Shown here in pieces: positions 259-63,762 of a stretch of 64,000 bases of DNA (positions are counted from its first letter, which is position 1; each line of letters starts with the position of its first letter). Source of the DNA: Paragordius varius (lineage: Eukaryota; Animalia; Nematomorpha); NCBI GenBank assembly GCA_964247055.1, contig OZ176055.1, positions 4,030,001-4,094,000 of the forward strand. The letters run 5' to 3'. The notes below the pieces were generated by a model. It was not told where the DNA came from and searched no databases. It saw only the letters and a list, made by a program, of their open reading frames with translations. Made by a program: the position numbers and the translations under genes.

Positions 259-1090
259 ATGAATATTGATGTGTATAGTAATAACCGGTCAGGCCTGGCC
301 AGCCGCGGTTTGGGTGTTGTGGCCAATAATACAAAGAGAATGCAAAGGAATACGGGATGCCTGTATCTTGCTAGTTTAAATGTTGGTTCATTGAAAAGTA
401 AGTTAAATGATATTGTGAGAATAATGAAAGTTAAACATATTGATATTTTGGCATTACAAGAGACTCGTTACCGCGGAAACGGAGCAAGGACTTTGGAAGA
501 GAATTTTCGACTATATTACTCAGGTGAAAGTGGCGGACGAAATGGAGTGGCAATTATCATTAATCCCAAATTGTCCAATCAGGTTAAAGAAGTAAGACGC
601 TATAACAGCCGAATCATGAATTTAGATATTTTGGTAGGTAACGAGGTCATAACAGTATTTATTATATATGCCCCGTAAATAGGTTTACCAAAACAAGAAA
701 AGGAGCAATTACGAGACTCTAGATAAAAAAATAGTCGCTCTCCCTCAGCTCAGAGTCAAGTTTTTATGTGGGGATTTTAATGGTCATCTTGGTTCAAAAA
801 GGGAATCTTTTGAAATATGACACGGGGGACATTCTTATGGAGAAAGAAACGAGGAAGGAATTAATTTGCTCAGATTTGCACAATCTCACAATTTGGCGAT
901 AGCGAACACGTTTTTCGAAAAAAGAGAGAATCATCTAGTAACGTCATCTAGTAACTTTTAAGAGCGGCATAAACAAATCTCAAATAGATTTTATACTTGT
1001 TCCAAGAGACTTATTGAAGCTTGTAATAGATTGTAAGGTCGTGCCAAACTTAGAGGTTAGTTCGCAACATAATTTACTTATTTGTAAATT
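259..1090 (+). pseudogene. APE-type endonuclease domain of the RTE element, disrupted
   Basis: Premature TAA at 676-678 (YAP*, where YAPQ is typical), later frameshifts, and a local duplication tcatctagtaac at ~930-955. Confidence 0.85.
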
Positions 1091-1600
1091 TTTCGTGAAA
1101 GAAAAGTCTAAACAAAGTGGTTTTTATTCAAAGAGATTAAAATGTATTAAGTGGGAGAAATTATCCGAAAAAAGGCAGGCTTTTATAAAAGAAATACGGT
1201 TATCCGAGGATGGTGGGTTAAATGGTGATTGGGATAAAGTAAGTCAGTTAATCAAAAAGGCAGGAACTCTAGTTTGTGGATTAAAAAGCGGAAAATCTCA
1301 AGTATACAGAGAGGCTTGGCTTTACGATGAAAGAATAATATTGATGTCACGAGAAAAAGGTAAGGCTTTTGACAAATGGAGACATACAAGGAATGATGAT
1401 GATAGAGATAAGTATAAAAGTTTAAACAAGGAATTGAAAAAATTAGTCGGCCAGGTTAAGAAAGAAAAAATGAATTTATTTTATGATGAGTTAAATAGTA
1501 AGAAAGGTTTAAACAAAGTGTATAAAGTTGCGCACCAAAGGAATAAACGCAGGATGGATTTGCCAGGTTATGCGACTGCAAAAAAGGAAAAGATGGAAGC

Positions 1601-3189
1601 TTGCTGTGCGAAAATGTAGAAATATTAAAAAGATGTAAAGAGTACTTTGTGAGTTTAGATGAAGGGGTGGGCGAGATATTCTTGCCAAATACAGTTGAAG
1701 CTACTGATAGACCAATAGAAGCAATTACACAAAAGGAAGTAGAATCTAATTTGTTAGAAATGCCAAACAACAAAGCTGTAGGATCGGACGACATAAATAT
1801 AAATTGTTGGAAAGTGCTTGGAAACTCTGGATTAAATTTTTTGGAGCGTGTATTTAATAAAGTTGTTTCAACGTATGAAATCCCGGTTGAATGGAAGGAA
1901 AGTTTAACTGTGCCTTTATTTAAAGGAAAAGATGATATAAATGAATGTAGTAACTATAGAGGGATAAAACTTATGTCGCACACTATGAAATTGTTTGAAA
2001 AAATAATTGAAAAGCGAATCAGGAAAATGATATCTATAGAAGGAAATCAATTTGGTTTCATGCCAGGAAAGTCAACAGTAGATCCTATACATGCGGTTAG
2101 GAGGTTGATTGAAAAACACATTGAAAAAAAGAAAGAATTACACGGGTTTTTGATTGATATAGAGAAGGCGTTTGACAGGATTCCTAGAGAAACTATTTGG
2201 TGGAGTCTCCGTCGTAAAGTGCCAGAAAGTTATATTAAGTTGTTACAAATAATGTACGAATCACACACCTCCAGGATTAAAACTCCACAAGGTTTATCAG
2301 AGCCTTTTCAATAAAGCATGGAGTCTACCAAGGCTCATCACTCAGCCCCTTATTGTTTATAATTTGTATGGACGAGGTAGCCAAGGTTGTTAATGTGAGT
2401 TCAGGATGGTACTTAATGTATGCAGATGACATAATCATCTTGTCTGATTCATTAATTGAATCAAAGCGAACGGTAAACAGATGGGTTGTTATGCTGGATC
2501 AATATGGTCTGAAAGTAAACAAAGCAAAAACCGAACTTATTACTTTTGGGGGTCCACAACATGAAATGGTAGTTGATGATAGTTGGGTTCTGAAGGGTAA
2601 AGAAAGTTGCAAATATCTGGTAGCTATGTCAAGTGCAGATGGTTCGTTGACTGACGATATTAATTTAAGAATAAAGAGCAGCTGGGTAAATTGGAAGAAA
2701 ATTTCGAGCGTATTATGCGATCGAAATATTGATGTTAGAGTGAAAGGTAAGATTTACAGTTCAGTTGTCCAGCCCTCAATGATGTATAATTCACAGACAT
2801 GGGGTGTCAAAAAATCCGAAGAAAGACATTTTAACGTGACTGAAATGAAAATGCTCAGAATGATGTGTGGGGTAACTAGAAAGGACAGAATCGAGAATAG
2901 ATTTATTCGTGGGAGCACAGATATTAAACCAATAGTGGAAAGAATGTCAAAAAATAGGCTACGTTGGTTCGGGCACATTGAAAGGAGAGATTCTAATTAT
3001 ATTGCAAAAATAATAGATGGTTATATAGTTGAGGGAAAACGAGGACGTGGGCGACCTAAAACAAAATGGATAGATACAGTAAAAAGAGAGGTAGCAGAAT
3101 ACGAGCTTAATGCAGAGGACGCCATAGATAGAGTTCTATGGCGAGACAGGTTGTATAACATGACCGCTCTCACGAGTGAAAACATGTAA
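1601..3189 (+). pseudogene. Reverse transcriptase domain of the RTE element, frameshifted
   Basis: RT motifs through DIEKAFD in 1601-2314; a frameshift near 2310 moves QGSSLSPLLF and YADD into the frame of ORF 2353-3189. Confidence 0.9.
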
Positions 3190-16790: not shown

Positions 16791-17743
16791 CTTAGTACTA
16801 GTTACACTGTAAAAATTATAAACTTTTTCTCTAATAGATGAAAACAATGTTTTGTAATTAGATAATAATGAAAATAACTTTCATTACTGTAATTTATTTA
16901 CGAAATTGCCGGAAGATAATACTACCACTAAGGGTAAACTAGAACAAAAAATGGAAAGGTAATAAAGAGTTAAGTATAATTATAATAGAGACATGGTACT
17001 TGCCTGTTTGGCCTAACTGCATAGAGGAAGCTGCATCCTAGATCAGCTATCATGATGACCAGGGTAACGTTTAGGGATTCATTATAATTAATATAAATTA
17101 ATGGACTAAATATTTACCAAATTTTACAAAAAGGATATATATAATATTTTAGCGATGGACCACATTTCAATTTAAATGGTAAAATACCCCATTCTAGCAA
17201 GTAAAAATTAAGCCACTTGGTATATCATATCTATTTTAAATCCAAAGCATCGTTCAATTTATATCGAATAATATTAACCAAATTATATGGACGCAATATA
17301 TTTGTGTTTAGTATCCAAATGCTTACATTTTAATTTATAAATCTAACAAGCATTGATCTTAAAAAACGAATAATTCAATGCTATCAATGATTGCATATGA
17401 TACCTATAATCAGCGATAATGCGTAGTAAAAATATTTAAAAACTTATGTTCTTGTATATATAATTAATGTTCTCCAAAATTAAACGGTATAATTATTATG
17501 TTGTTAATTTAATAAATTTTATGTTAAAAAAAGACAAATTATTTACCTATTTTATTTTACTGAATTTTATAGTATCATAAAAGCAGATAATTATCATGCG
17601 CTCGCTGTTCAAACAACGATGAGCAAAATGCTGATCTGGTTTTGTTTGTTTAGGGATGGTAAAAGCGTGTATAAATAAGGTATAAACAAATTTGAACTTT
17701 CAATATTTCCAATATTTTTTTATTATTGTTTGTTATTACATAA

Positions 17744-20700
17744 ATGGAAATTTGCCCATTTTATAGTCGAATAGGCGCTTGCAGACATGGTGAAACTTGT
17801 ACAAGGCAACATGATAGGCCTGATTATAGTCGAGTATAATTGTAAATTATTTTTTAGACTATTTTGATTACCAATTTATATATAAATCCCAAGCATGCAA
17901 TCCAATCTCAACGAATAAGTAACAATATTTTTAATTTGAGTCGGAAATTTGCCACAAAATACCACAACTGATGAAGAGGAGCAATCATATTTTGATGACT
18001 TTTTTGAAGAAGTTTTTAAGGAATGTTTTGAAAAGGTAATTTTATTTAATATATTTATTGCATCATTATTCTTGGTAATCTATTATAAAATATGATGCGA
18101 ATTGGTTTTAAAACGATCGCTTAATAGGATTTAAAATTGTTATTGGCTAAATGTTTAAAAATTTAATCGAATTAATTGGTTTTAATTGTTTATTAATGTT
18201 TAACTATAACTTTAATCGGTAAGGCTAATTTAGCAAATACATATTTTGTTTTTTTATTGCTATTTAACCACTAACAATATCTGTTACTTGTTAATGAATT
18301 GTATATAATAATGGTATGAACATTTTTGGAGTTATAGATTGCACATGATGCATCATCTACCTATAAATAAATTACAATTTTACAAAATATATTTAGACTT
18401 TCCGCCAGTAGTTGAATATTTAATATGCAATAATATTTTTAGTCATATATTTAACTATTTCTCCTTCACCCAATGAGTATTGTAAATCGCCTTCAGATTA
18501 AACCATAAATAATTTCAATTAATTTTATATGTTTTTCACACTTTGAAGTAATATTCACCAAAAATATTTTAGGGGGCCAAATAAAATCTTTTTTCTGACT
18601 CAATATCCGTACTTCAAACAGGCAAACATGGCATAAAACATGTGTAGATTTTGATACTTTAAGTAAAAATAAATGAATAGCCAAAGCAAGGGTACGGCTT
18701 TGATTACCCTTGCTTTAGTACATCAATGCTGAATTTTATTTTTGATTATTGAACCCCTTACATATTTTACATAATATTTAATTGAAAACAGGCGTAAACA
18801 TGATGAATTTACTATTTTTCTTAAAGTGTTTATCTATCTTTTAATGGGTTCAATATTGTTATGGTGTTTGAATTATATTTTTTTAATTGATTAGTATGGG
18901 GAGATTGATGAAATGAACGTTTGTGGCAACCTTGGAAAACATTTATATGGAAACGTTTTTATAAAAGTAATTTGATGATCGCATTTTACGCATAACCTTG
19001 AACTGTGACTCATGTTTTTCACATAACAGTTATATGATATACCATTTACAGCTCAAATTCACCCTTAAACAATTCATATTCACCCCTGAACAATTCAAAT
19101 TCACCCTCTAACAATTCAAATTCACCCTTGAACAATTCAAATTCACCCTAAAAATAAATTATGTGTTTTCGAACTAATATAACCCATTATTAATGAGAAA
19201 TATATCTTTATGGCATAGTTTATTATTTTTTCAGTCTTATTTAAATTTAAAACAAAATTTTTATTTTTTAAAAATATATAAAAATAATGGGTAATTTTTA
19301 ATCTAAAAACATATTTTATTTGAGGGTGAATTTGAATTGTTTAAGGGTGAATTTGAATTGTTCAAGGGTGAATTTGAATTGTTCAAGGGTGAATTTGAAT
19401 TGTTTAAGGGTGAATTTGAATTGTAAATGGTATATCTTAATGTTTGATTTTTATATTTATGGATATTTAGAAACAAAAATAAGTTTTTAAATCAAACACG
19501 ATATTTTTATTTTAAATTAAATAAACATTTCTCAAATGCGTTTTTAAAACAATTTAGTTTCAAAGAAGTAAATATGCACAAAAAGCCTACCTTGACCTCA
19601 ATAATCGATGGTTTGGAGGAAGGGCTATGAATGTCGAACTTTCTCCTGTCCTTGATTTTTATGGGGCTTGTTGTCCACAATTTGATCGCGGGTATTTTAT
19701 AAGATGTTTACAGTTTTTTTGATTTTGTACAATTTTGTCGTTTGTAGGCATACAATAAAGAAGGGGCTTTTGATTTGATTTAACATTGGCATAACCTAGA
19801 TTATAATGATATTTTAATGAAGGTGGTCTATATACAAAAATTATATTATCCCTTTAAAAACGGTGTCATACTTTATAAATTTTATTATTCTTCTTCTTAT
19901 TCAAATATAGTTGTTTAGTAAATTAAATACGGATAGCTGCGAATCTTGCTAACGGTAAATTTGAATGTTTTTTAACCTAATAATCTTATATTTTATTTGC
20001 ATGGTATTATGTGTAATATTGAAAATTAAATATTTTTTTATTGGTCTTTAGTCAACAAAGAGTAGGGTCAAAGTTTAATATATCAAATCTTGTTTTTATA
20101 AAATAAGATTTCTGTATTAAGTAAATGCAGGAATTAGTTTTTGTGATTAAATTAAATCCACAGAGCAATGTTTTTTAACTTAGAATGATTATTGATATTA
20201 TATGTTGATTTTTTATTATTTTAGGGATTAATTTAATTATTTCTGCCGATAATAATATTTAAAAATCCTTTTTTATCAAAAGACATAAATGCTTATTGTA
20301 CAAAAATAATCCTCGCTAAAAGGCTATCCAGTATATTTATAATAAATTTTATCATTATTATAAAAATCCAAATCATAACACAATTTTTCTATATAATTTT
20401 AAATCAACACCTAGGCAAACATATTATTCATATTTTATAAATAAGAATAAAACGGTGTAAACAAAAGTCTATTTAATGTGTTCTTTATGAAATAGTAGCG
20501 ATATGCTAGGAGGTATGCATTTATTTCTCAATATTCTACATTATATAATGGGCTTTAATACTTTATATAAAATATTTATTATGTTATCGTCCCTTCTTCT
20601 AATATAGCGAATGTCAACGAGGTGATTTTTGTAATTTTATGCATTTAAAACCCATATCAAAAACGCTCGAAAAACGAATCGAACACTATTTGTCAGAGTA

Positions 20701-21470
20701 TGAACGCCAAATTAAACGTGAATATAAACGGTCCAAACATCATAAACACAGTAGTCGATCATCCAGTAGATCTAGTAGTAGGAGTTCTTCAAATTTTTCA
20801 ACTTCTGCCTCAAGTGATAATTCACATTCGAATGACTCTAGAAAAAACCGTACTTCCAAAAAACGCTCACATAAACATCGAAGCCACAGTGGATCCCGTA
20901 ATGCCCCTACGAGACGAACACCAGATTATGGGTGAAAAACTTATTTATTTTTATAACTCGCTGTATTTTTGATAAATGTTTTTACGTTTCAAAGCATTTT
21001 TTCTTTAATTATGATGTATTTACGCCTATACCACTTTGGAAAAGGCGCAAAGTGGATTTAAAATGCATTATTTTTTATTACTAATTTTTTAAGGCAGGAC
21101 TGTAATTTTCTAAAAAAATATTGATATTTTGACATTTTATAATATATATGGTCTTGATCTTTGATTTTATTATTTTTAATGTAAATTTGCCATTTATTGT
21201 GTACTTAGCCATAAAATTGAAACGATCGATATTGAGAAAGAGGATGATATCGATAATAAAATTGGAGATAAAGATAATATGCAAGATTTCATTGAATCGC
21301 AACTTGATAAAATTCCCAATAAAAGTTTGGTTGCCAAAAAAGGAATGCCCACATCCCCGCCAAAACCTAAGAAAATTAAGAGGGACAATGAAAACAAGAA
21401 CAAAGATTTGAGCCAGCAAACGTCCCTAGTTGCTGCCTATTTTCAACAAACAGATTCTGATTCCGAATAA
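17744..21470 (+). CDS. U2AF1: Divergent U2AF small subunit (U2AF35/U2AF1-like), ~345 aa
   Basis: Exons 17744-17833, 17858-17918, 17941-18035, 18895-18966, 19558-19691, 20608-20931, 21209-21470 (1038 nt, phase-consistent). ZnF1 [20 protein letters not shown]; [51 protein letters not shown]; ZnF2 [20 protein letters not shown]; S/R/K/H-rich tail. Orthologue versus paralogue is unresolved. Confidence 0.92.
17834..17857 (+). other. 24-nt spliceosomal intron
   Basis: GTATAATTGTAAATTATTTTTTAG, phase 0; contains an in-frame TAA; it is the only GT-AG solution joining DRPDYSR to [11 protein letters not shown]. Confidence 0.85.
17919..17940 (+). other. 22-nt spliceosomal intron with GAG acceptor
   Basis: GTAACAATATTTTTAATTTGAG, phase 1; removal restores the frame into [17 protein letters not shown]. 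Confidence 0.75.
19037..19435. mobile_element. Foldback-like MITE family B, young copy (in U2AF35-like intron 4)
   Basis: Perfect terminal ATATACCATTTACA/TGTAAATGGTATAT; 4-5 copies of the ~20-bp unit per arm. Confidence 0.88.
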
Positions 21471-22399
21471 ATTTTGACATAAACTCTGAAACGCGACTTT
21501 TTAAATGATTAAAATATTGAATGCATATACATCATTATTTATATGGCATATAGTAACGTTATCACTTAATATATCATTTTTCTAGTCTGATAATGGGTAA
21601 GGGTCCTATTTGCACATTTAATTTATTATATTTATGGCTAAATAAATTTATTTGTACATGTATGTAATATCTTGTATTGTAGTGTATCCCCTAAACTCTT
21701 GTAAAATAGTGAACTTCCTAATAAATAAAATTTCTCGGCCGGTATGGTATACCTTATAGGATGATCAAATATAGCTGTTTTGTTAGCAGAAGATGTAAAC
21801 CCTTACTGTAGCATACGTTGCATTGCAATTTAAACCCTCTACCTTTATCTTTATGATGTTCTAGGAGAAATTAGTTAAAGGGAAACTTTATCTTCGTCGC
21901 CGGCTAAAGCTAATATTCCTGCGGGAGAGTACTAGATTATTTACGTTTAAGAAGTAAGATTTTCAAAATGTAACTGATTTTTAGTGCCTTATAAAAAGGA
22001 AAGTAATATTTTTAGAAATTATTTTTTTATGTAGGCGTAATATGAGCTAGTTATAAAATAATGCCGAGATTGCGCGATAATTTGAAATATATGCTAAATT
22101 TTAGTCTCAACTAATGTTTTTCATAATTTTGTAGAAAATTTATTTTTTAGAATTTTTGTTGTAGTGTACTTCATACTTTCTTAAGGCAGGGAAATGATAT
22201 AAAAACGCTTTAAAATATTATCAAAACACTTTTTCTATGTTCGATGTATTTAAAGGGTCTGCTTGAAATTTTTGGGGATTTTTCGCAAAAATTCACAATT
22301 TATATTTATAAATTGATGACGAACAAATATTTTTTATAAAAATTCTGAGGTGATAGAAATATTTAGCAACATTGAGTTAGCTTCAAATTTTGCTTAATA

Positions 22400-22770
22400 A
22401 TAAATCCTATGAATAAAGTATGCATATATTTAACATTTTTGCGCGATCTCGGCATTTTGCTTTTATTTTATGAAGCCTTTTTTAGAAGATTAAAAAAATT
22501 TGGGACTTTCGGCGCGCTGATGCAAAAATTAAAATTTAATATTATTATGCTTTTATATTTAGTTTATGATATATTTTGGTGATGTTTTTTAGAAAGAAGC
22601 ATTTAGCTCTCAACAAAAAAAATCTTTAAAAAATGTGCACAAATTCCGCTATTTTCTGATGCACTCGCCTGCGTAAATAACTTTCTTATAATAAGTGCCA
22701 TAAGGATCTAAACCAAAAGTACCAAGAAAATCTTGATACATTTTTTTATGAAAAATGTACACCGTGTCCC
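22400..22770. repeat. Dispersed repeat family G, probably a DNA-transposon remnant
   Basis: tttgggactttcggcgcgctgatgcaaaaatt and its flanks match ~33130-33400 in inverted orientation; a related motif occurs at ~7130-7240. Confidence 0.45.
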
Positions 22771-23530
22771 TAAAAATATTCTGATCTATATATCCGATAG
22801 GAAAATACATCAGGATTATCATTGTTGGTTTTGGTCCTTACGAGTAAATATGACTTTTTCGGGATTTTATATCCCACAATTAAAAATTTGATCAACTTAA
22901 AAAGTATTTTAGGTATTAAGCCGAATTATTTTTCTCTCAAACTTTTTCGCCATCATTTTTTCCTAAAACTTTTAACATTTCATTACTTTTTCACCTTTTT
23001 GTCCTCTCTTACCTTTTGGGATAGTTTAATACTCAATTTGTTAATGAAACTACCTATTGTTATTTTTGTATTTACTTTTCTTACTCTTGCTATAACTTAT
23101 CGAATATTTAAGATGGGAAAGCATGAAAAATCTACTCTGTCAATTCCGCATTAAGCTTAGTTAAAATTGAATTTCAATTAAATATTATATGTATTAAAAA
23201 AAACTTATTTTTTATAGTTTTGTGATTTCTAGAGTTTGAGATTGTGACAGCTACAAAACAAGATCGCAACAAACAGTTGATATTAAAATCGAAATATATA
23301 AAGTTTTTGCTTAACACTTCGATTCAAAATGGGGTATCTAAATACCCGAGACTAAATTTAAGTTAGGATTTTTAAAAAACTATTGTAATTCAAATTTATG
23401 CTTCTATCTCAATAAAAATTATATAAATATGCCAAAATATCTAAATAAAATTTTGTTTGAAAAAAAATTTCCATGTTAAACTACTTCGACGCCATTATTT
23501 TATAAACTTTTTGCAAAATATTGTCTTCAT

Positions 23531-24117
23531 TTAACACTTCGTTTTAAATTGGGGTATCTAAATACCCCAGACTAATGAGTTAGGATTTTTAAAAAATACT
23601 GAAGTAAACGGTCCCAATTTAAATTTATGCTTCTATGCTAATAAAAATTATATAAATATGCCAAAATATCTAAATAAAATTTTGTTTTGAAAAAAAAGTT
23701 CGATGTCAAACTACTTCGACGCCATTTTTATTTTACAAAATGTTTGGAAAATATCGTCTTCATTTAATTTTAAGGGTAAAATTAAAGCTAATTTTATATT
23801 TAAATTACATCTAACATTGATAGAAATAAAAAAAACTGTTTATTTTGTATTTTTTTTTAAATTTTACCATTGCACGCATGTCAGGTTGACTTAATTTTTA
23901 CCTTTCGGTTTTAGCTTAAAAAATGTAATAACAAGTATTGTTGAATAAATTTTTTTATATATTTCGGTTTATTAATGTTATATAAGTGCAAGTATTTGCC
24001 ATGGTTTCGATTCCTTCCATATTCTTTGAAGAATTTAATTTTAAACAGGCCTGGGGTATTTAACTACCCCAATTTGAATCGAAGGATTAAAATGAATGTG
24101 TTCTCTTCAAGTGTTAA
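23531..24117 (+). mobile_element. piggyBac-like MITE family A, nested copy, same orientation
   Basis: Complete ~580-bp copy bounded by TTAA at an internal cat-TTAA-ttttaaggg site of the outer copy. Confidence 0.88.
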
Positions 24118-24311
24118 TTTTAAGGGTAATAAAGCTAATTTTTTAAATTAAATTACATTTGACATTGATAGAAAAAGCGGCTTCTTTTGTAAAATTTTCA
24201 ATTATTGCACACATGTCACGTTCAATTTTTACCTTTCGGTTTTAGCTTAAAATAAGTAATCTCAAGTATTTATAAATAATTTTTTTATATATTTCGGTTT
24301 ATCAATGTTGT

Positions 24312-24896
24312 TTAACACTTGGATACAACACATTCATTTTAGTCCTTCGATTTAAATTGGGGTAGTTAAATACCCCAGGCCTGTTTAAAATTAAATTCTT
24401 TTAAAAATGTGGAAGGAATCGAAATTATGGCAAAATCTTGCACTTTTATAACATTAATAACCGAAATATATAAAAAAATTTACTCAAAAATACTTAATAT
24501 TACTTATTTTAAGCTAAAACCGAAAGGTAAAACTTTAGTCAACGTGACATGTGTGCAATGGTAAAATTAAAATAAGACTAAATAAACCGCTGTTTCTATT
24601 TCTATCAATGTTAGATGTGATTTAATAAAAAAACTAGCTTTAATTTTACACTTAAAATCAAATGAAGACGATATTTTGCAAAAATTTTGTAAAATCAAAA
24701 TGGCGTCGAAGTAGTTTGACATGAAACTTTTTTTTCAAAACAAAATTTTATTTAGATATTTTGGCATATTTATATAATTTTTATTAGCATAGAAGCATAA
24801 ATTTAAATTGGGACCGTTTCCTTCAGTAGTTTTTCAAAAATCCTAAATCAAATTTAGTATGGGGTATTTAGATACCCCAATTTGAATCGACGTTAA
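24312..24896 (-). mobile_element. piggyBac-like MITE family A, nested copy, inverted
   Basis: Complete reverse-complement copy bounded by TTAA; ~70 bp of the host copy is missing at the left junction. Confidence 0.85.
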
Positions 24897-26079
24897 ACAG
24901 GCCTGGGTTATTTAACTACTCCAATTTGAATCGTAGGACTAAAATGAATGTATTGTATCCAAGTGTTAATACAGCCTGAAAGCTGGATGTTATTTGCAAT
25001 TTCTAACCATATACATTTATTTGTATGCATTAGAGTTTTAAAAAATTAGGGTAAAAAATGGAGGGAAAAGGTTTAAGGTGAGTGTTTTTTTTAATTTTAA
25101 ATTTTATTGAAAAATATTGTGTTAAATGCTAATAAAAAGCTAAAAAAGCATATTTTTAGATTTAAAATAGGTTACTTGATATTAAAATTACAAATCGCTG
25201 TGGGATAAAGCTTTTCCAAATAATTTAGTGTTAATCATAAATACAACAGGCAAATAAATATGTTTAAATTAAATATAAATATTAAATTTAGAAAGCTTAC
25301 AAATTTCAATTTACTATTTAATTTTTTGTATTGATCCATTTAAATATCAACTTTTTGATCGTGTTTTAGAGCTATCTGAATTTGGGCTCTACAAGTCAAA
25401 AACTGCGATTAAGTTTATCTAATACAGGAGAAAAGGGTATGATAAATTTGTAAGTCAAACTTTCAAAACAGTTGTTTGTTTGGTATGGGGTAAAAAACTT
25501 TAAAATCACATCGCGTACAAGACAATGACCAGATACTTATATTATGGATAAGGTGACCAGACGTCCCGCTTTTGGCGGGACAGTCCCGCTTTTTCACACT
25601 TTGTCCCGCGTCCCGCTACGTTTTTAAAATGTCCCGCTTTTTCACGATTATATAAAAAAAATTTTTTTTAAATTTTTTATCATTAAATATCTTTAATCTA
25701 TTCAATATTAAATTAAAATTTTTTATTTTTAAATTAAAAATATTTATTTTTTTCGAATTTATATCATATGATTATACATGCTTCCTACTACTACTGTCAT
25801 CATTATCAAAAAGCCAAGTTATACCACAAATCTCTAGATTAAAAGACAAAATACCACAAATCGGCACCTTACAAGTTTATTCCAGAAAATTAAGGTAATA
25901 TAATATTTATTATACTATTATTTTAGTTTTATTACTACCCAACATTATTAAAAAGCCAAATTAATACCACAAATCGGTAGCTTAAAAGACAAATTGATAC
26001 CACAAATCGGTACCTTACACGTTTATTCCAGAAAATTAAGGTAATATAATATTTATTATACTAATAGTAGTTTATAAAT

Positions 26080-27822
26080 ATGAGCACAAAAAGAGGTTGT
26101 AAATTCAACGATGAATTAATCAAAGATTTTCCTTTTATCAAAAAAACGAAGAATGAATCATCTGTTAAATGTCTTATATGCGAGGGGGAATTCACCTTAG
26201 CACATGGCGACAAGCATGATATTACAAAGCATATGGAAACATAGAAACATAAAAAATGTTTAGATATGGCGGCATCATCTTACAAAAGGAGCGATTTTTT
26301 TCAAAAAACCGCTTTTGGAGAGGAAGAAAAGAATTTGGCACTAGCTGAGGGCGTGTTATCTTTTCACGCCGTTAATCACAATCATTCCTTTAGATCTATG
26401 GACTGTACCTCACAGGTTATTTGCACGTTATTCCATAAAAAATTTACATGTGCCCGTACAAAGGCTGAAGCCATTGTGTGCAATGTCCTTTCGTCACGAG
26501 CATTTTCTGAAATACAAAAAGATTTGCTAAAAATTAATTTCTTATCCCTATACTCTGATGCATCAAATCACCATGAAACAAAATTATTTCCCACTTTAAT
26601 AAAATATTTTGATTCAGAAACCGGAGTAAAAATTAAAATTTTAGATTTAATTTTTCTACCTTGTGAAAATTCCGAAAGAATATTTACTTTAATAATGCAT
26701 ATTTTAGAAAAAAATAATTTAAAAGACAAAATCGCATATTGCGCTGACAACACCATACCAACTTTGGTGGAAAAGCAATGAGGGGAACAAAAAATATTTT
26801 TTATAAATTAACAGATAATCTTAATCAAAACATTATTGGCGTTGGGTGTGACACGCATATAATACACAACGCTATTAAAACAGCTGCTGATTTGTTACCC
26901 CTAGATGTGGAAAATTCATATTTTTATATATACACGGTACGTGTTGAAACGCTTAAAGAATTTTGTGAAAATGCAGAAGTTCAATATCAAAAATGCTTGG
27001 ATATTGTTAAACTCGTTGGTTAGCTTTTATGCAAGCTATCGAAAGAATTTTAAAAATGTATGATCCTTTAAAATCTTTTTTTTATCACAGGACAATGTCC
27101 TACAACTTTAAAAAAGTTTTTTGAAAGTGATTCTTCAAAAATATGGTAATTCTTACATAATCAAGCTTCTTCCTTTCAAAATGTTATTAAATTTATAGAA
27201 GGTGACAACATTTCGACAATCGAAGTAGCCAATGAAGTTAGTAACCTAAAATTCCAATGTCAAGAACGGTTAGAAAATAATTTTATACCATTAACCATCC
27301 GCAATATAATAAATAATTTAGAAAAAGGCTTAATAAATCGCCAAGATATCCTGTACCTATAAAAATGTTTTATACAAACTGTAAAGATTATTTGGAAGAC
27401 TGGACGACGCAATTCAATGAAATTGATCACTTCATTGGATAACATTAATATCAGAATTTAATTGGTGCGATGTTCAAAAATCATTTGATTATATCTGCTC
27501 CCAAAAATTCTCAATACGTAATCTTTCAGAAAATGATCTTTTTTCTGAAGTATCATTAGTTAAAAGATATATTAATAATGAAAAACTTAAATTATGAACA
27601 AAAGAAAAATATACAGTAGAAAAGAAATGGTTGGAAATATTTCATCATTTTGAAGCCAACTATATTACATACAATAATATTTTAAAAACTGTGGGATTCG
27701 CACTATCTTTACCTGGAACCAACGCTGCTACTGAGCGCGTTTTTTCCACAGTAAATCAGGTGTGGACATCGGAAAAATCAAATCTAAATGTTGAAACTTT
27801 AAAGGCCGTTTTATCTGTCTAA
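26080..27822 (+). pseudogene. hAT transposase pseudogene
   Basis: ATG at 26080; BED-type zinc finger CLICEGEF..HDITKHMET*KH with a nonsense codon; LYSDAS (first catalytic D); CDTH (CxxH); C-terminal dimerisation motif LSLPGTNAATERVFS; several stops and frameshifts. Confidence 0.92.
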
Positions 27823-27949
27823 TATAATTTGACAAACTCCAGTGAAGACTTCTACAATATTTAAAATGATGACAATCTGCTAAAACGCATTCACACAAAA
27901 AATATACCAAAGAATAAAATATTTTCTTATATTTATAAAGTTTTTATGT

Positions 27950-28790
27950 TAAAAAATAAACAAAATTACTTAAAATAGTGTATAATCTTCATAATTTGTC
28001 AAATTATATTTGAACACATAAAATGGCTTTTATTCAACATTTAAATTTGATTCCGTGCCTTACTTAATTTACTGTGAAACGCGTTCAATAGCAGTGGTTT
28101 AGGTAAAGATAATGCAAATTCTACATTAAAATATTGTATGGAACATAATTTGTTTAAAAATGATTATTTTAACCATTTCTATCCTATGTATTTTTTTCTG
28201 TTGTCCATAGTATAAGTTTTCATTCAATATATTTATTTAATAATGAGACTTCATAAAAAAGTGTCATTGTGCACCGTCTTGTCTTCCAAAAAATCGTTTC
28301 TGTTTGTATAAAACATTTTTATATTCTGGCTATTCATTGAGCCTTGTTTTTCTGGATGCTTTATAATATTGCGATTAGGTAATGGTATAAGATTATTTTC
28401 TAACTTTTTTGACTTGGAATTTTGACCTTTGTCCTGTGATAAAAAATATGATTCTAGGAGATCACATTTTTATAAATATTTCAATCGCTGGCAAAAGAGC
28501 TAACCAACAGTTCTACAATATCCAAGCATTTTAACATCCATATTTTCTACATCCAGGGGTATCAAATCAGTAGCTGTTTGAATAGTGTTGTGTATCTGCC
28601 AATAATGTTTTGATTAAGATTATTCGCTAAATTGTAAAAAATATTTTTGTACCGCTTCTTGCATCACCCAGCGCACTTTATGATGATTTCGTTTTTATTA
28701 TTTTTTCTAGAATATTACAATCACTTCACCCTTTGTTCGTGCACATGTAAATTTATTGAATAAGGTACAAACAACCTGAAGGTACAAATT
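27950..28790 (-). pseudogene. Inverted, internally deleted, diverged second copy of the same hAT transposase
   Basis: Reverse-complement matches to 26400-27880, including an exact 26-nt match (26815-26840 vs 28598-28623) and further blocks at ~26991/28515, ~27077/28430 and ~27704/28101. Confidence 0.85.
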
Positions 28791-28795
28791 TTTTT

Positions 28796-29362
28796 ATATA
28801 CCATTTGCACCTTCCTTGAACTTCAAGTTGGTCCTTGAACAATTCAAGTTGGTCCTTGAACATTTCAAGTTGGTCCTTAAACACTTCAAGTTGGTCCTTT
28901 GACTTTTTAGTTTTGTTTTTAATTTTTATCAATCAAATCGTAATTAATTCATCTATTTTATTGTTTTTAACCTATTTTCTATTATTTAATATAAATTTTA
29001 AATCGATATCAAATTTTAATCTTTGAGAAACCGTATATCTTTATTAATTTCTTTAAATAATTTCGTATATTTTTAAGACTTTAACACGAAATGAAAAAAT
29101 ATATAAGTTTTATGGGTTGTTAATTATTTTCATCAAAAACATTTAAAAGTTAATAATTTTATTCAATTGAAAATAGTTTGAAACAAAAAAGTGGTTTTTT
29201 AATAAAATTTTTTATTTTTAAATGAATAAATATATTATAAATGAAGAAAATAGGTTAATAATAAAAAAATAAATGCAAAAATTATGGTTAAATCAAAATT
29301 TATAAATTTTAAGGACCAACTTGAAGTGTTCAAGGACACTCTTGAAGTGCAAATGGTATATT
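28796..29362. mobile_element. Foldback-like MITE family B2, nested in the hAT element
   Basis: TIR TATACCATTTGCAC/GTGCAAATGGTATA; 21-bp unit ttcaagttggtccttgaac(a) repeated in the arms. Confidence 0.82.
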
Positions 29363-29632
29363 TATAATGTATTTGTGTTAAAAATAAATAAATATTAGAA
29401 TAAATTTTTTGTATAAAAATTTTTGGCTGTACCCCCCAATGACCCCCCCCCCTTCTCAGATTTGTCCCGCTTTTTTCCTCAAAAAATCTGGTCACCTTAA
29501 TTATGGAGAAACTTTGGTTCTAATAAGAAATGACCTGATACTTATATTATGGATGAACATGTGGGCAAAATATAAACATGTATGAACATTTATAGAAATA
29601 AATCATTTTTTCTGTCATTACTGTCTAATGTT

Positions 29633-30190
29633 TTAAGCACTTCGATTCGAATTGGGATGTCTAAATACTCTCAGGTAATATTTAGGTTGATAATTATAAA
29701 AAACTACTGAAAGATCCAATTAAAATTTATGCTTCTATCCTAATAAAAATTATATAAATAACCGAATTATTTAAATAAAATTTAATTTTGAAAAAAGGTT
29801 CTATATCCAACTAGTTTGACGCCATTTCTCTTTTGCAACAACTTTGCAAAATATCGTGTTTTTTAAAGCCAAAATTAATATTAATTTTTCATTTAAATCA
29901 CATCTAACATTGATCGACATAAAAACGGGGTTATTTAGCTTAATGCATATTGTCATGTTTACTAAGTTTTTACCTTGCGGTTTTATCATAAAGTAAATAA
30001 TATCAAGTATTTTTATGGAACTTTTTTTTATATATATTGGTTCATTAATGTGATATAAGTGCAAATTTTTGCCATGGTTTAAATTTATTCCATATTTTTT
30101 GAATTATTTAATTTTAAACAGGCCTAGGTTATCCAACTGCCCTAATTGGAATCGAAGGACAGAAAAGAATGTGTTGAATCCAAGTGTTAA
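29633..30190 (+). mobile_element. piggyBac-like MITE family A, diverged copy
   Basis: TTAAgCACTTCGATTCG...CAAGTG-TTAA; collinear with the 33960 copy. Confidence 0.82.
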
Positions 30191-30424
30191 ATTGGAATTT
30201 TAGCGTTAGAAGACAACACACGCTATTCTTCTGAAATGTTGTATAAAATGGCCTCAAAGTAGTTAGATATGGAGTTTAAAAATAAATTTTTGCTTTACCT
30301 TTTTATTATTTATAGAATTTTAAATTGAACTCTTAACTATATTAAATGCAGTCAAGTTACACCAATATAAATCGAATACTTAACAGCTATATTAGTGGGT
30401 GAATAAATTTATAAATCCTCCCTT

Positions 30425-31478
30425 ATGTCATTTTGCTTCAATAAGGGTTAAATTTAATTTATATTTTAGGGAAGGACAAAATAACTTTTTTAGCCAAAGA
30501 AGACTTTGAGAAACTACCAAACTTAGACGAAAGAACACAAAAAGCACTTTTTGAAGATGACGATGAGCCAAAAGGTTTGTTTTTTTGTTATTACCAATCA
30601 CACTGATTTATATAGATGGATGGGTGTATTGCTGCAATCGAGGTCGACTTTTTGCAATATTATATTAAGTTTATAAATTTCTGAACCTAAGTTCAAAGCT
30701 TCTTTAAATCAATCGAAATAAGTCTCTTTTAGTTTTTGCCAATGTTTAATCACTTTTAATTTTTTTTCATTATGGACTGAAGAAATCTTATTCATTTCTA
30801 GTCTTTTTTTGGCATAGTAATGATTCAATTCGTTTAAATTTTTTTATTCTAGGTTTAATTGCAAGCGATGGAAGCATAAATTGGAGCTGTCCATGTTTAG
30901 GAAATATGGCTGTGGGACCATGTGCCCAAGAATTTCGTTCGGCTTTTACCTGTTTTCACGATTCTAATGCCGAACCAAAGGGCTCAGATTGCTTAGAAAA
31001 ATTTTCCTCGATGCAAAATTGCTTTATTAAATATCCAGAACTTTATGGAGACATCGAGGAAAAGGGTGATCAGATTGGCAAAATCGATATGAACGAGGAA
31101 AATACCATTAATACAAAAAGTGAAAATAAAACTAATTCTAAATTGAATAATGAATCTCCACCAAAAAATCCAGAAATAAATAATACCAAATTAACACCTG
31201 AAACCACAAAAATATCCGGTATTTATATCTTTTAAACTGATTTTTGATTACTATTTATTATAACAATTTGAATAATAATTGTTGAGTTGTTTACGTATTA
31301 TATATTTATATTTTTCGATACAAACATATATTTTATTTTAGAAACTGAAAATCCAGAGCCTCTAAATGCCGCAAATATGGAAAACATTCGAAAATTTCAT
31401 CCTAAAACAAAAGAGGATCCCGTTCCACCACATGATTCAATCGATCGTTTTGCACCTAAAATATCGCTGTTTTGGTGA
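30425..31478 (+). CDS. CHCHD4: Mitochondrial intermembrane-space oxidoreductase Mia40, ~209 aa
   Basis: Exons 30425-30446, 30470-30574, 30853-31218, 31342-31478. [20 protein letters not shown] matches the animal N-terminus MSYCRQEGKDRIIF; [17 protein letters not shown] (CPC) and twin CX9C motifs. The last exon is less certain. Confidence 0.93.
30447..30469 (+). other. 23-nt spliceosomal intron
   Basis: GTTAAATTTAATTTATATTTTAG, phase 1; retention gives an immediate TAA after MSFCFNKG. Confidence 0.85.
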
Positions 31479-31703: not shown

Positions 31704-32621
31704 TTATAAATCATGGTTTTTATACAAATTAGAATTTGCATCAAAAAAAATTCCTTTAATTAAATCAATGTGGAGACATAAATAAGGTATGTGGTCGTTT
31801 GTGGTTGGATTTATACCATTTAAATTTGTTTGGAAATCAGATATTTCATAAAAATCAAATGTTTTATCTTTACCACTTCCTCGTTCTTTAGCTAATTCAC
31901 CCGTAGTTATGGATTGGAAATATTTTTGATCTAAATCAGTTTGTTTGACTAGTAAGCTTCCTTTCTTATACATTTGTCGTTCGTTATTGTAATTGCGACG
32001 AAATTGTGAGAAAAGTATTTCATTTTTATCATTAGATAGCGTCCCTTCCAAACGTTTTTGAGCTTGAGACAAAGATAAACCACCATCTTGAACCAAAGCC
32101 CAAAATACGGTATTATACAAATTATTAACATGACAATCTACCTGTCTCCATCTCAAATAATCCCATAAAATACGTGTATTAGGATATGCTATGATACGAC
32201 TATCAAAAACAGGTAAAACTTTCAAAGCTTTAGTTTTAAAGAAATGACCCCAAAAATAGGTATAAGCGGATGTAAAAAGACTGCAGACATGGGAGGCAAG
32301 TTTGCAAGCTCTCCGATTAACATAATCTGTGTCACGCGCAAACACAAAACTATATTCATCGCTTTGACCATAGGCACAAATAATATCGGTAAAGGTTTTC
32401 ATTACGTTGTATGCACAAAAATTCATTAATTCAAGGGCTTTTTCATCGTTAGGTTTTTGGAATTCGTGTAAATCAGTAAATTTATGGAAGCTTTTGCCAT
32501 CAATGCGACACACTATGTAACAAGCAGGGAGAATCGTATCAGATAATTCAAATGATTTTACATAATCGTATTTCTTATTCGCAAATGATAAATTTTTTCC
32601 TATTTTGGCCGTTTGATTCAT
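31704..32621 (-). CDS. THG1L: tRNA(His) guanylyltransferase Thg1, 305 aa, intronless
   Basis: KYDYVKSFE, RIDGKSFHKF (first catalytic D), YGQSDEYSFVF (second D), FDSR, WRQVDCHVNNLYNT, KNEILFSQF. Confidence 0.96.
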   Translation of the reverse strand: MNQTAKIGKNLSFANKKYDYVKSFELSDTILPACYIVCRIDGKSFHKFTDLHEFQKPNDEKALELMNFCAYNVMKTFTDIICAYGQSDEYSFVFARDTDYVNRRACKLASHVCSLFTSAYTYFWGHFFKTKALKVLPVFDSRIIAYPNTRILWDYLRWRQVDCHVNNLYNTVFWALVQDGGLSLSQAQKRLEGTLSNDKNEILFSQFRRNYNNERQMYKKGSLLVKQTDLDQKYFQSITTGELAKERGSGKDKTFDFYEISDFQTNLNGINPTTNDHIPYLCLHIDLIKGIFFDANSNLYKNHDL

Positions 32622-57963: not shown

Positions 57964-60900
57964 ATGAAACAAATGTTTGGATCATATTTGTTAGTTCTAT
58001 TAACTCTGACCAATATAAAATGTGCAAAAATGGTTTCACAATCAGTACGTCCCCCCTTTTCCGATAATTTTAACACGTATTACGAGAATGATGATTCAAC
58101 CTTAGTCGATCCTGAGGAGATTGAGGAAAATTCCAATATTTTAACCCAACTATCAGAATACATCATACCTTTTTTTCCTTCTACTCGAAAATTACATGAA
58201 CTGAATAACATAAAACACCAACACAAATCGGTTATATCAGAAAATATTATTCCTATAACAGGATCATGGGGAGATCATGTGAACCTTCCTTGTCCAGCAC
58301 TTCATTCCTATTTGGAGTTTCGAGGTTTTATAACAACTCCACCTACAAATAACTATTTGAAAAACGATAATGCGGCAAAAAATAAAACTTTCCTATCAAA
58401 AATTCGTAAACGACATAGCGCTAATCGCCGAATGCGTAATAAATGGTATTCATCTATGACACGCACAAAGGTAGATACTGATAATATTGTTACGAAATGG
58501 TATAAGGTCGAACATGAGGGCATGAGATATAATCAAAATGCACCTAAAAATCAAGATTCGGCAATGAAAATAAATGCAAATAATAGCATTTTAAGTCCAA
58601 TATATATTGTTTTAATACCGTATGTGCCCCATGTAAGGCCTGATTATGCGGTAAGAACAACGTTTAATGCCCAAACGTCAGAACTCAAAATATCTAATCT
58701 CACTTTCAACGATGAGGGATATTTTGTTTGTAAGGTAAACACTACTTATTAGATTTTATCATTTTTACCTGTAAACATTAGTAAATTTTTATTTTTATAT
58801 TATAATATAATTATTATCTGTTTAAATTCCATTTATACATTTTTAGTAAATCTACATACATTATGGTAACTCTCATTTTTTCCATTATACAATACTTTGT
58901 AAATTTTAATAAATAGATACAATTTACTTGTAATTTGATACAAGTCCGGCCTACTTATTAATATTTGTGATATTAAAAAATAACAATAAATTTATTACAT
59001 AATGATAATCATAAAATAGAGTAAATATATATTAAAAAATGATGATTGATATCACACAATGGATCTGGAAACAGAATCTGTTTTTAATTGGCCCCATTTT
59101 TATCAATAAAATAAGAGTATTCTTATTATCATTTTATAATTAAATTAATTATGAAAAATACTAATATCATTCTTACATAATTAATGATGATTTTAAAATT
59201 GGATTTAGATATTATTTTTAGATAATTTAATTTATTTTTATATTAAATTAAGGCGAACTATTTAATTTTAGATAAGAAGCGATAACATTATTATAATTAA
59301 TTCTCCTTTAATATTTTATTAATTTTTTTTGCAATAGATTGTGTATTTGAAAAAACCGGCCGAAACAAAAGGCTATACAAGTTTCGTTAACCTGCAAATC
59401 CAAGGTGAGAAATTGCATTAATTTTTTGTGTCATATTGAACAATTTGTCGTTTTTTGGGTCTTTAAATTCAAATATTTTTCAATAAGCCGGTGAGCTTGA
59501 TTATGTGGAATGGTTTTGCACATAACATATTATTTGTTTGAATATATTTTCACAAAATTTAAAATTGGACAGTTTTCCACTCTAGATACATTTAATATGC
59601 TAATCAATTCACCAAATATGACTAATTAATACAGAAAACATAGATTGGAAATGATTTAATGAATATGGTTCATTATTAAAATGTAAAAATGAGTTTAAAC
59701 TCACTGAACAAATTTGGGTCCTTAAAAAGTCATACTGATGCCGAGAATGTATGATTAAAAAATAAGCCCGTGTATAGGATCGTTATATGCTGATATTTAT
59801 GGAAATTCGCGATTTACCCTTAAAGAAAACATACTTATGACAATATCAATGCTGATTAATAGGGAAGTTGATAAATTAATACATACATTGAAAATTGAAT
59901 TACCACGAGTGCATCGTGTGATATTATTTAACGCAAAAATAAATTATATTAATACTGATTTACTTTATAATTTAAATTATATTTATAGCCAAACCAAAAA
60001 TCTTGGTATCTCATAGTAATACTGATTTTTTTGATTCCACCAAACCTGATCACGATAGAGAAACAAATGCATTTTCCACTTCATCCCAAATCTATGCCAA
60101 TTTGGGAGGGCGAATTGATATTAATTGCACCGCCGTGGGTATACCTGAACCTCAAATTTCTTGGACACGCACTATAAAAAATCTCCAAGTCGGTTTAAAT
60201 CCTACAAGTTTAGAAAATTCTCTTGATCCAGCTTTTGCTCAACCCAATGATTATCAGCAACCATCGTCCACATCTAATTTTGGAAATACAGTTCGATTAA
60301 AACGGCGCCAATTAAATGTTCCAAGGCAATACTCACATAATTATTGGATGGCAGCTAATAATATATATGTTGGTAAGCTGAAATCAGCAAAATCTATAAT
60401 GTCCATTCCTCTGGTAACTTTGGCTCATAGGAATGTCGTATACACCTGTTTGGCCAAAAATGATCAAGGAACTGCTACTCACTCATATGAAATAACGATC
60501 TCAGGTAATATTTTTATAATTTAAAATATTCTTGAATAACCCATCTAATAATCTAAGCTTATTAACTTAAATATAGCCTTTTTACGGAAATATCAAAAAT
60601 TTAAAACATTTTTTTTGGATAATTTGTCAATGCATTCCCACCCATTTAACGATATTAGTTATATATAAGTAATGAGTTATCAAATATAACTTTTGAAGAT
60701 ATTGCCTGAATTATTGATTTTTTATGCAATTTAAATTTTTGAGATATAATAATAGGAAAAAACATTAGAATATTACTAATAATAATACTTTATTATTTTC
60801 TACCATATAAAATAGCCTCCTAATATTAAAAAGTAAGGACTTTAAATATACTCTTGGAGCTATAAGGCGGTTTTAACACTCGTCTGCCCATGGCTCATTA

Positions 60901-61448
60901 ATCACGGGAGAGTGGTTTCAGATTGGCATCAAACCATCAGCTATCCTATTTTTTTTTATTTTATAATTTCGAATACTTCTCTATTAAAAATTTTGAATTA
61001 TAATGGCTTATACCTATAAAAAATAGAACTTTTAATCACAGCTTCTTTAATTTTTATTGGTTAATAAACCTCTATAAAGTTCGCATATGTTTTTTAGATT
61101 TATAATTAATCTTTTTCCTTAAAATGTATAAAAAAAATATACCATAAAAACCTTGAGATAATTTTTAATTAAAATTAATGTCCATAATTTCCGTACCGCA
61201 AAATAGCTTTTTTCATAAATTTTTTATGAGTTTTTTAGTAAATCTCTCTGGTGTGTACCATATATAATTATCTTCCAATTAAATATGAGGATTAATTAAG
61301 CTTGTAATTGAAGAATACCTATGATGGAAAAACTGAAAAATTTTGTGAATACAATAATTATTTATGAGGTTATAACAATATTATTAATTTATTCAATTTT
61401 AACATTAATTTTTTGAAGAAATTTGATCATTGCGCTTTTGAAATTGGT

Positions 61449-61513
<65 letters not shown>

Positions 61514-62267
61514 GGCTTAGAACCGGTTTAAAAAAGTGGAACCGGAACTGGGTCGGTTCCTTAACAAGTGGAACCGGAACCGCGTTGGTTTCTTGAAATT
61601 TTTTCGGTTCCGGAACCGGTTCTTTACATATAAAACCGGTTCCATTTTCGGTTACTAACTTTTAATTAAATGATTTTCTTACAAAATTATTATAATAATA
61701 ATAAACCAAAATATTAACAATTATAAATAAAACGATTTATTATAAATTTCCAAATGTAGAGTGAAAAAAATTTATTGTAGAATAATAAAACAAATTATAT
61801 AAAAATAGGAAAATGTATAACTACAAAGGTATATTGTGAGTGTTAAATTAAGTACGGCATCTAAAAAATTTTTTTAACTTTAATTATTGCACCAAGCAAT
61901 TCGCTGGTCAAACTACTTCTCAGGTCTGAAAATAGAAAATTAAGGCTTAAACTCCTTTCAACGTAGACCTATATATGTACAAAAATATGTATTATAAATA
62001 AACTTGAGTTAAGACTATAAGTTTAGTTAGAACAGCCGAATCGCCCAAAATTCAGAGAATATCGCTAATATAATATTAGGGGCATAGTTTTAGGTTTGAA
62101 GTATGTAATATGTACTGGCACAATCAAATTTAAATAATAAAATATAATTTTTATAATAAAAATCCTATGGAGACCAGTATTTAAGGAGGTGGAACCGGGC
62201 TGGTTCCAACTCAATGGAACCGGTTCTTGTTAAAATCCAAGGAACCGGGTTCTGGTTCCAAGCCCAG

Positions 62268-62299
<32 letters not shown>

Positions 62300-63762
62300 G
62301 TCTGTTATATTTTGGAACCCTTTATAAGCGGGAATTTTAAAGTATAAATCAATAGAAAATAAAGAAAAAAAATTATTTAAAAAAGACCTTTCACACAGTG
62401 ACGTATAATATAATGATATCAAACCTCATATGTCCTGTTAAAACTATTTAATCCAAACTTTTAGAATCACCTAAAATAGTTCTGCCACCTCAAAATTTAA
62501 CAACTCTTGAGGGACTTGCAGCAAGATTCGATTGCGGTGCTCAGGCATTTCCATCCAACGTTACACATACCTGGCTTAAAGGTAAACCATTTTTTTAAAA
62601 AGGATAAGGATTGTGGGAACGTAACATATTACCAATAATTTATTCCCTTATTTAGACGGGTCCCTCTTGTCACAAAAAACGGATTTTGGTTCTCGAATAA
62701 TTTATCATGCCATGACAGGGGCAATGACCATTAATCCCACTTTTAAAAGCGATAATGGCCAATATAGCTGTGTGGTGGAAAACGGAGTTAATCCGAAAGC
62801 TCAAGCTTCCGCCTATTTGGATATACAATGTATGGCTAGAAAAAAAATATTCTCTTTTTTTGAAAAAAAAACAATTAATAAATTTTTCCTAATAGATCCT
62901 GCCAGTATAAACGACAAGGCTCTAAAAACGAAGCAGTATCTCCCTCAGGGATTGTTTGGTGCAATTCAATGTCCTGTGCTATCAAACCCTAATTTGGAAT
63001 TTGTTATTTGGACGAAAAATGGAAAAACTATTGATTCCTCATTAGAAACCATCTTAGCAAAAACCGATGAAAATAATAATAATGGCAATTATAGAACATC
63101 CACTCTTTTGCCAGAATTTAAGTGATCTTGCAAACCCTTAAAATATTTTTTAAGTTTTTGTAATATAAGTTTCCGTTCTCTGCTTAATAATACTTGAAAA
63201 TTACATTTCATTGCAATCTATGTTGTGAGAATGTTTGTCATTAAAATGGCTATAGGAATTATAAGTCTATATAACGTACCCTCAAAACTAATAATTAAAT
63301 ATATTCAAAGTGATTAAATATCCATTACTTGTTTTATTAATAATTGCCAAATAACATATTCAGAATAATGTTGTGTTTAAAGTTATTTTTTCACTTTTTC
63401 TTGCTATATATGGTATCTGGAAATACTTAATTATAAACTGGCATTAGTTATTCTCATCTTTTGTAAAACCCGAAAAATCGGGAGTCTAAAAATATAACAT
63501 TTATATATTTTGTTTAGTAATTTGATTCATCAAATCGAACCCTCCAATAATGTTGATATTGTACCAAGCGAAACCAATAATGATAATATTAATACATTAA
63601 CTTTGCAAAAAAATATTTCAGAGCCATATCGAATCGCAAGGAATGGCTCACTTTTTATATTTCAAGTCGATCGCAAAATTCACGAAGCTGTATACACCTG
63701 CACGCCATACAACAAAATAGGCACAAACGGTCCATCCGCCCCAATCCACGTTTATGTAAAAG
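57964..63762 (+). CDS. IGSF9: Turtle/IgSF9-like immunoglobulin-superfamily cell-surface protein, 5' part (continues beyond the window)
   Basis: Exons 57964-58734, 59338-59404, 59989-60504, 62465-62581, 62656-62829, 62896-63121, 63518-63762 (phase-consistent). Signal peptide plus four Ig domains; PIYI..YVPH..LKISNL...DEGYFVCK, PPQNLTTLEG..FDCGAQAFPSNVTHTW and AYLDIQYPA..QYLPQGLFGAIQC..SNP....VIWTKNG are typical of Turtle/IgSF9. Confidence 0.8.
60865..60945 (-). mobile_element. Partial SINE copy (intronic)
   Basis: Minus-strand tgggcagacgagtgtta matches the 47461 element at 16 of 17 nt. Confidence 0.4.
61457..61510. repeat. (TA)n microsatellite flanking a MITE; a second tract lies at 62268-62290
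   Basis: Direct reading. Confidence 0.95.
61511..62267. mobile_element. MITE inserted in a (TA)n tract (hAT-like termini)
   Basis: 14-bp imperfect TIR CAGGGCTTAGAACC/GGTTCCAAGCCCAG; clustered GGAACCGG/CCGGTTCC subterminal motifs; (TA)n on both sides. Confidence 0.85.

Follow-up and report, generated by a model that had tools for sequence, protein, structure and literature searches.

Candidate spliceosomal introns of 22 to 24 nt at ancestral positions in two genes of a nematomorph-like genome

Short introns in other lineages

In a survey of 51 animal genomes (2026), myxobolid cnidarians and Dicyema were the only animals with introns shorter than 30 nt, which the authors tied to genome reduction; U2 small nuclear RNA and U2AF were conserved in both groups, and splice signals were reduced (PMC13644364). 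Flatworm genomes of up to ~680 Mb have micro-introns, with length peaks of 37 and 90 nt, that cluster at the 5' ends of genes beside 3-kb introns (PMC6530080). The present analysis concerns a 64-kb stretch of DNA (contig OZ176055.1, positions 4,030,001 to 4,094,000; the whole stretch is hereafter called the window). Three segments of 24, 22 and 23 nt, called here micro-introns 1, 2 and 3, interrupt a U2AF35-like gene (micro-introns 1 and 2) and a Mia40 gene (micro-intron 3) of the window. Judged by comparative sequence evidence, the three segments are very probably genuine U2-type GT-AG spliceosomal introns, derived from ancestral bilaterian introns that became this short in a lineage resembling nematomorphs.

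The micro-introns resembled those of myxobolids and Dicyema japonicum (~22-27 nt) in their GT..AG ends, conserved positions, minimal 5' motif and A-run before AG, and in that their hosts are parasitic, but the short class is dominant in those animals (median 22-27 nt) and was a minority at the 5' ends of genes in the window. Myxozoan genomes are compact (~20-200 Mb), whereas the genome studied here is repeat-rich, carries introns of 278-916 nt in the same genes and would be that of an ecdysozoan (PMC13644364). The likeness to flatworms (Opisthorchis, Clonorchis, Schistosoma, Echinococcus and Macrostomum) lay in clustered micro-introns near the transcription start, long introns and large genomes, and the difference in size (22-24 nt, against flatworm peaks of ~37 and 90 nt) and in phylum (PMC6530080). 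Ciliates (Paramecium ~25 nt, Stentor 15-16 nt) agreed in size range and in having a conserved spliceosome, but are unicellular, and short introns are essentially their sole class (PMC5014332, PMC13644364).

An earlier note on this DNA had named dicyemids as the animals with introns under 30 nt; this holds according to the survey, which adds myxobolid cnidarians to an incomplete list (PMC13644364). Two size classes in a non-compact animal genome, also claimed there, were borne out by several independent indirect lines of evidence, but as an architecture they were no novelty, flatworms having preceded. In the searchable literature no paper connected hairworm genera to intron size, and the word 'intron' is absent from the Gordionus genome paper. 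The two-size architecture is already known from flatworms; what would be new, within the searchable literature, is introns shorter than 30 nt in Nematomorpha.

Structure, position and variation of the micro-introns

The U2AF35-like gene is on the plus strand. Exon 1 (17744-17833) starts with ATG at 17744, encodes zinc finger 1 and matched residues 18-43 of S. pombe U2AF23 (PDB search, E = 2.8e-8); an in-frame TAA stands directly 5' of the ATG, and the usual 15 N-terminal residues are therefore absent from the protein. Micro-intron 1 (17834-17857; 24 nt, GT..AG, phase 0) separates it from exon 2 (17858-17918; 61 nt, with counterparts of 64 or 67 nt in fish and 64 nt in Gordionus), whose 20 residues alone gave no match in a PDB search. 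Micro-intron 2 (17919-17940; 22 nt, GT..AG, phase 1) leads to exon 3 (17941-18035), which is followed by intron 3 (18036-18894; 859 nt, GT..AG, phase 0), exon 4 (18895-18966; 72 nt, as long as the Gordionus exon), intron 4 (18967-19557; 591 nt, GT..AG, phase 0), exon 5 (19558-19691; 134 nt as in fish and Gordionus, with the end of the UHM domain) and intron 5 (19692-20607; 916 nt, GT..AG, phase 2). Exon 6 (20608-20937) encodes zinc finger 2 (Pfam zf-CCCH) and a Ser/Arg-rich tail and ends with TGA at 20935-20937. The introns of 859, 591 and 916 nt of the earlier note were supported by exon lengths and phases common to orthologues. Its 277-nt intron (20932-21208), with a further plus-strand exon (21209-21470), is doubtful: the frame is open, but neither intron nor exon has homology support, and the TGA lies at the proposed donor.

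A foldback element (19033-19439) takes up most of intron 4; its 127-nt arms consist of 21-nt tandem units, are 91% complementary and enclose a 153-nt loop. Its word depth in the DNA runs reached 1.8e7, which ranks it with the commonest repeats of this genome, and the 591-nt intron is inflated by this mobile element.

The Mia40 gene, also on the plus strand, starts with an exon of 22 nt (30425-30446; ATG at 30425), which encodes MSFCFNK plus 1 nt, followed by micro-intron 3 (30447-30469; 23 nt, GT..AG, phase 1), exon 2 (30470-30574), intron 2 (30575-30852; 278 nt, phase 1) and exon 3 (30853-31235), with the CPC motif, the twin CX9C and a TAA stop. The gene belongs to the Mia40/CHCHD4 family, as both motifs are present and the database matches carry PF06747; its large exon retrieved only Mia40/CHCHD4 proteins, and the best matches were from arthropods. 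Searches with the Mia40 and Thg1 proteins gave no match above ~77% identity; the databases contained no protein of this species, and the Thg1 of the window had no entry in them.

Read without splicing, the U2AF35-like gene runs into R-V-stop after 17833 and the Mia40 gene into K-G-stop after 30446. With the micro-introns removed, residues 4-175 of the U2AF35-like protein aligned without a break with full-length U2AF35 of many phyla (54-58% identity), and zinc finger 1, the UHM domain, zinc finger 2 and the Ser/Arg-rich tail were all present. All exons were open, and the Cys and His residues of the zinc fingers were intact. The N-terminus of Mia40, spliced across the 23-nt segment, gave a gapless alignment with MSFCKQE/GKDKIIF of Hyalella. 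The three introns that the earlier note had required for rebuilding the two proteins were thus confirmed as exact in coordinates and size, with stops in the unspliced readings and collinear products.

Each micro-intron starts with GT and ends with AG, and has 9-18% G+C. Its first three letters are GTA or GTT, and AG is preceded by a T-run and, at a distance of 6-13 nt, by an A-run (n = 3). Two of the micro-introns are the first two introns of the U2AF35-like gene and the third is the first intron of Mia40; the later introns of both genes have 278-916 nt. Three of the eight supported introns in the window were micro-introns and the rest had 278-916 nt; the short class was not dominant.

Exons of annotated orthologues were mapped onto their genomic loci, and intron positions and phases were compared. 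Two fish U2AF1 genes have a phase-0 intron after Q44, an exon of 64 or 67 nt and then a phase-1 intron (119-1856 nt); these two introns occupy the same positions, in the same phases, as micro-introns 1 and 2. The canonical U2AF35 of Gordionus montsenyensis shares position and phase with all five introns of the window gene and has the same gradient from short 5' to long 3' introns, and fish U2AF1 shares four of these sites, among them those of both micro-introns; the site of intron 3 (..K|YGE..) is common to the window gene and Gordionus and is not present in fish. The introns of this canonical gene (listed under Gordionus sp. m RMFG-2023, the same animal) have 43, 43, 174, 118, 1232, 694 and 579 nt (L005:2001-5558), and the counterparts of micro-intron 1, micro-intron 2 and the 859-nt intron have 43, 174 and 118 nt, respectively. 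The short introns of Gordionus, at 43 nt, are about twice as long as those of the window, and the comparison is between a canonical gene and a divergent paralogue. The 43-nt introns at the same sites suggest, across paralogues, that a class of short introns near the 5' end shrank step by step, and that no new kind of element arose.

Micro-intron 3 also occupies an old site. In Mia40 of Hyalella azteca, the first coding exon has 22 nt and is followed by a phase-1 intron of 141 nt, at the same position and phase as micro-intron 3, and a Mia40 isoform of Panulirus has an insertion at that exact point. Intron 2 is in phase 1 in both the window and Hyalella (L001:1242-2029), and the window site is one codon further 3'; this offset may reflect intron sliding or an alignment shift.

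Variation was assessed with DNA runs of another sample under the same organism label (X4 and X5), whose contigs were compared with the window. These contigs spanned 17606-18057 unspliced and without gaps at ~96% identity. In the second sample, micro-intron 1 had four substitutions and a 1-nt insertion, forming a 25-nt allele with GT..AG kept, and micro-intron 2 had a single change (G>T at 17938, TTTGAG to TTTTAG) with AG kept. All seven differences in exons 1-4 were in third positions and synonymous in the spliced frame (P ~1e-5 by chance, with 19% of possible changes being synonymous), and the three in exon 3 were synonymous only in the frame made by removing 22 nt. Differences were denser in the micro-introns (6/46 nt) than in exons 1-3 (6/246 nt; Fisher p = 0.005). 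The spliced frame is under purifying selection, and micro-intron 1 changes fast and differs in length between samples. Such a combination fits a protein-coding gene that purifying selection maintains and that apparently unconstrained spacers interrupt, and it argues against a pseudogene.

Paralogy, affinity of the organism and rival explanations

Gordionus has two U2AF35 genes, one canonical (P0445) and one divergent (CAK9301805 and XP_065321134). The window protein and the divergent Gordionus paralogue have in common the loss of 15 N-terminal residues, an M-(D/E)-x-CPFY start and ACCPQ in place of ACCRQ, and formed a group against 19 canonical proteins in the gene tree (97/97 support). Orthology to canonical U2AF35 was not supported, the window gene standing apart from all canonical proteins. 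By tree and shared traits, the U2AF35-like gene is not the canonical splicing factor but a fast-evolving paralogue that Gordionus also has; a canonical copy is to be expected at another locus of this genome. The ACCPQ motif, with Pro at the Arg position, precedes zinc finger 2. The window protein has Thr where CSRLH of fish U2AF1 has Ser, a position which we take to be that of Ser34 in human U2AF35.

Both public annotations of the divergent Gordionus paralogue are broken (proteins P0061, P0063 and P0328). The RefSeq model begins at an internal Met and enters the intron past the 134-nt exon, and the submitters' model is 160 kb long and does not include zinc finger 2. Short introns might lie behind these models.

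A site-heterogeneous tree built from 25 proteins placed Thg1 of the window and of Gordionus as sisters (97/97 support). Identity of window proteins to Gordionus was 46-58%, and near-identity to a named nematomorph was not found. The window has 26.6% G+C, against 26.4-26.9% in Gordionus. The gene order around Thg1 had no neighbours in common with the Gordionus Thg1 locus. From these comparisons, the organism is very probably a hairworm, with no more than a distant kinship to Gordionus montsenyensis.

If the micro-introns are spliced, the ordinary spliceosome would, on the simplest account, remove them by intron definition. Recognition would depend on a minimal 5' site (GTA or GTT), a branch site in the internal A-run (6-13 nt from AG) and a short T-run before AG. 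The introns nearer the 3' end of the same genes have stayed long, at least one of them inflated by a transposon. From these features we infer that the segments are excised from RNA and which factors would do so. A dedicated micro-intron splicing mode, which the earlier note had proposed, may exist. A further proposal is that hairworms evolved a specialised recognition of introns too short for simultaneous standard U1 and U2 assembly, in which the fast-evolving U2AF35 paralogue of the window and of Gordionus, which has no N-terminal helix and in the window is itself split by two micro-introns, would take part, and that the size classes would use partly different 3'-splice-site factors; this is speculative and rather improbable.

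In runs labelled as RNA under the same species label (X10 and X12), one contig each matched the U2AF35-like gene, only at 17969-18023 (55 nt) and at 85% identity. The sequence flanking this match encodes ..QIIENAPKISDEEE.. and, at the opposite end, ..IEREYGQIQE.., and the contig is therefore taken as mRNA of a close homologue. It is continuous across the positions of micro-intron 2 and of the 859-nt intron. At the level of sequence, it supports the reading frame of the U2AF35-like gene without proving its splicing. Its divergence would mean either that two or more species share the label or that a further paralogue exists. In its variable segment, this mRNA was closer to the divergent Gordionus paralogue.

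Several points weigh against genuine splicing of the micro-introns. The runs contained no RNA read or contig of the U2AF35-like gene or of Mia40, and splicing was unobserved; the fast-evolving U2AF35-like paralogue may not be expressed in this species. The second-sample comparison covers the two U2AF micro-introns, and the statements on branch site and 5' site are anecdotal, with n = 3 introns.

The lack of transcripts of either gene would also be expected if the genes were pseudogenes or dead copies with GT..AG segments as chance insertions, and the U2AF35-like copy is divergent and without its N-terminus. This is nevertheless highly improbable: the seven exon differences between samples were all synonymous, all exons were open, the zinc-finger Cys and His residues and the CPC and CX9C motifs were intact, and the segments stand at ancestral intron positions and phases. 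That the segments are artefacts of assembly or sequencing has a negligible probability, even with very AT-rich, low-complexity sequence being prone to error; the contigs of the other sample hold both U2AF micro-introns, with substitutions of their own and the 25-nt allele, and artefacts would not fall on conserved intron positions with GT..AG ends. The presence of both U2AF micro-introns in the DNA of the second sample thus means that they are not assembly errors, and the earlier note's reservation that pseudogenes or assembly errors might account for the segments was not upheld.

Removal or bypass by other means (programmed somatic DNA elimination, ribosomal bypassing or a non-spliceosomal RNA cut) is very unlikely. 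In its favour, the agent of excision is indirectly deduced and the DNA runs come from unspecified tissue, but the GT..AG ends, the homologous introns of ordinary spliceosomal type in orthologues and a size range that grades into the 43-nt Gordionus introns point to the spliceosome, and the TA-type or repeat boundaries typical of eliminated DNA were not present. Less remote, though still improbable, is that the introns are real and the organism is a flatworm, dicyemid or myxozoan with known micro-introns, in which case nothing would be new. Identity to Gordionus was only 46-58%, and the Thg1 and U2AF35-paralogue trees both join long branches, which makes long-branch attraction possible in both. 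Conversely, Gordionus was sister at 97/97 in Thg1 and in a derived U2AF35 paralogue with truncation and ACCPQ in common, the G+C content matched that of Gordionus, and the best Mia40 matches were from arthropods. Ancestral spliceosomal introns that shrank in a nematomorph-like lineage are favoured over these alternatives.

Other features of the window and implications

The earlier note's count of about six genes in 64 kb amid transposons was roughly right; a long interspersed nuclear element (LINE), the foldback element, an intronless Thg1 and an immunoglobulin (Ig)-domain gene were found. The LINE reverse transcriptase is at 1014-3189. A Pfam scan of the 26.3-28.8 kb region gave only a weak match to DUF2659, and an Rfam search of the window found no RNA family. 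Thg1 (tRNA-His guanylyltransferase; 31707-32621, minus strand) is complete in a single exon of 305 codons; it is convergent with Mia40 and lies ~470 nt from the Mia40 stop. The homologous region of Gordionus is within one large open frame (L004:9779-11236).

The Ig-domain gene (57964-63125) has large V-set and I-set exons and introns of 1-2 kb, and runs past the end of the window. The exon ends inspected in this gene showed no micro-intron; a candidate of 23 or 27 nt at the exon end 58726-58752 was rejected, a normal donor into a long intron being likelier. A scan of the whole window that joined open frames over GT(N)AG segments of 19-30 nt gave 287 joins, against 268-430 with control dinucleotide pairs; it was not discriminating and was not used.

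If confirmed by RNA, this would be the third animal lineage with introns below the supposed limit of 30 nt, an ecdysozoan one, and the only one so far whose genome is large and rich in repeats. With the same transcripts carrying transposon-filled introns of hundreds of bases, extreme intron shortening would, under the same proviso, be separated from genome compaction. The two genes would then offer a natural comparison within genes of what determines how short an intron the animal spliceosome can remove.

Gene finders with a high minimum intron length under-call micro-introns (PMC6530080). If the micro-introns are true, such settings would break the genes that carry them in annotation. The Gordionus genome has a BUSCO score of 71.6% (Gordionus genome paper); the low BUSCO scores of hairworms, and the claims of gene loss that rest on them, deserve to be re-checked at a lower intron limit.

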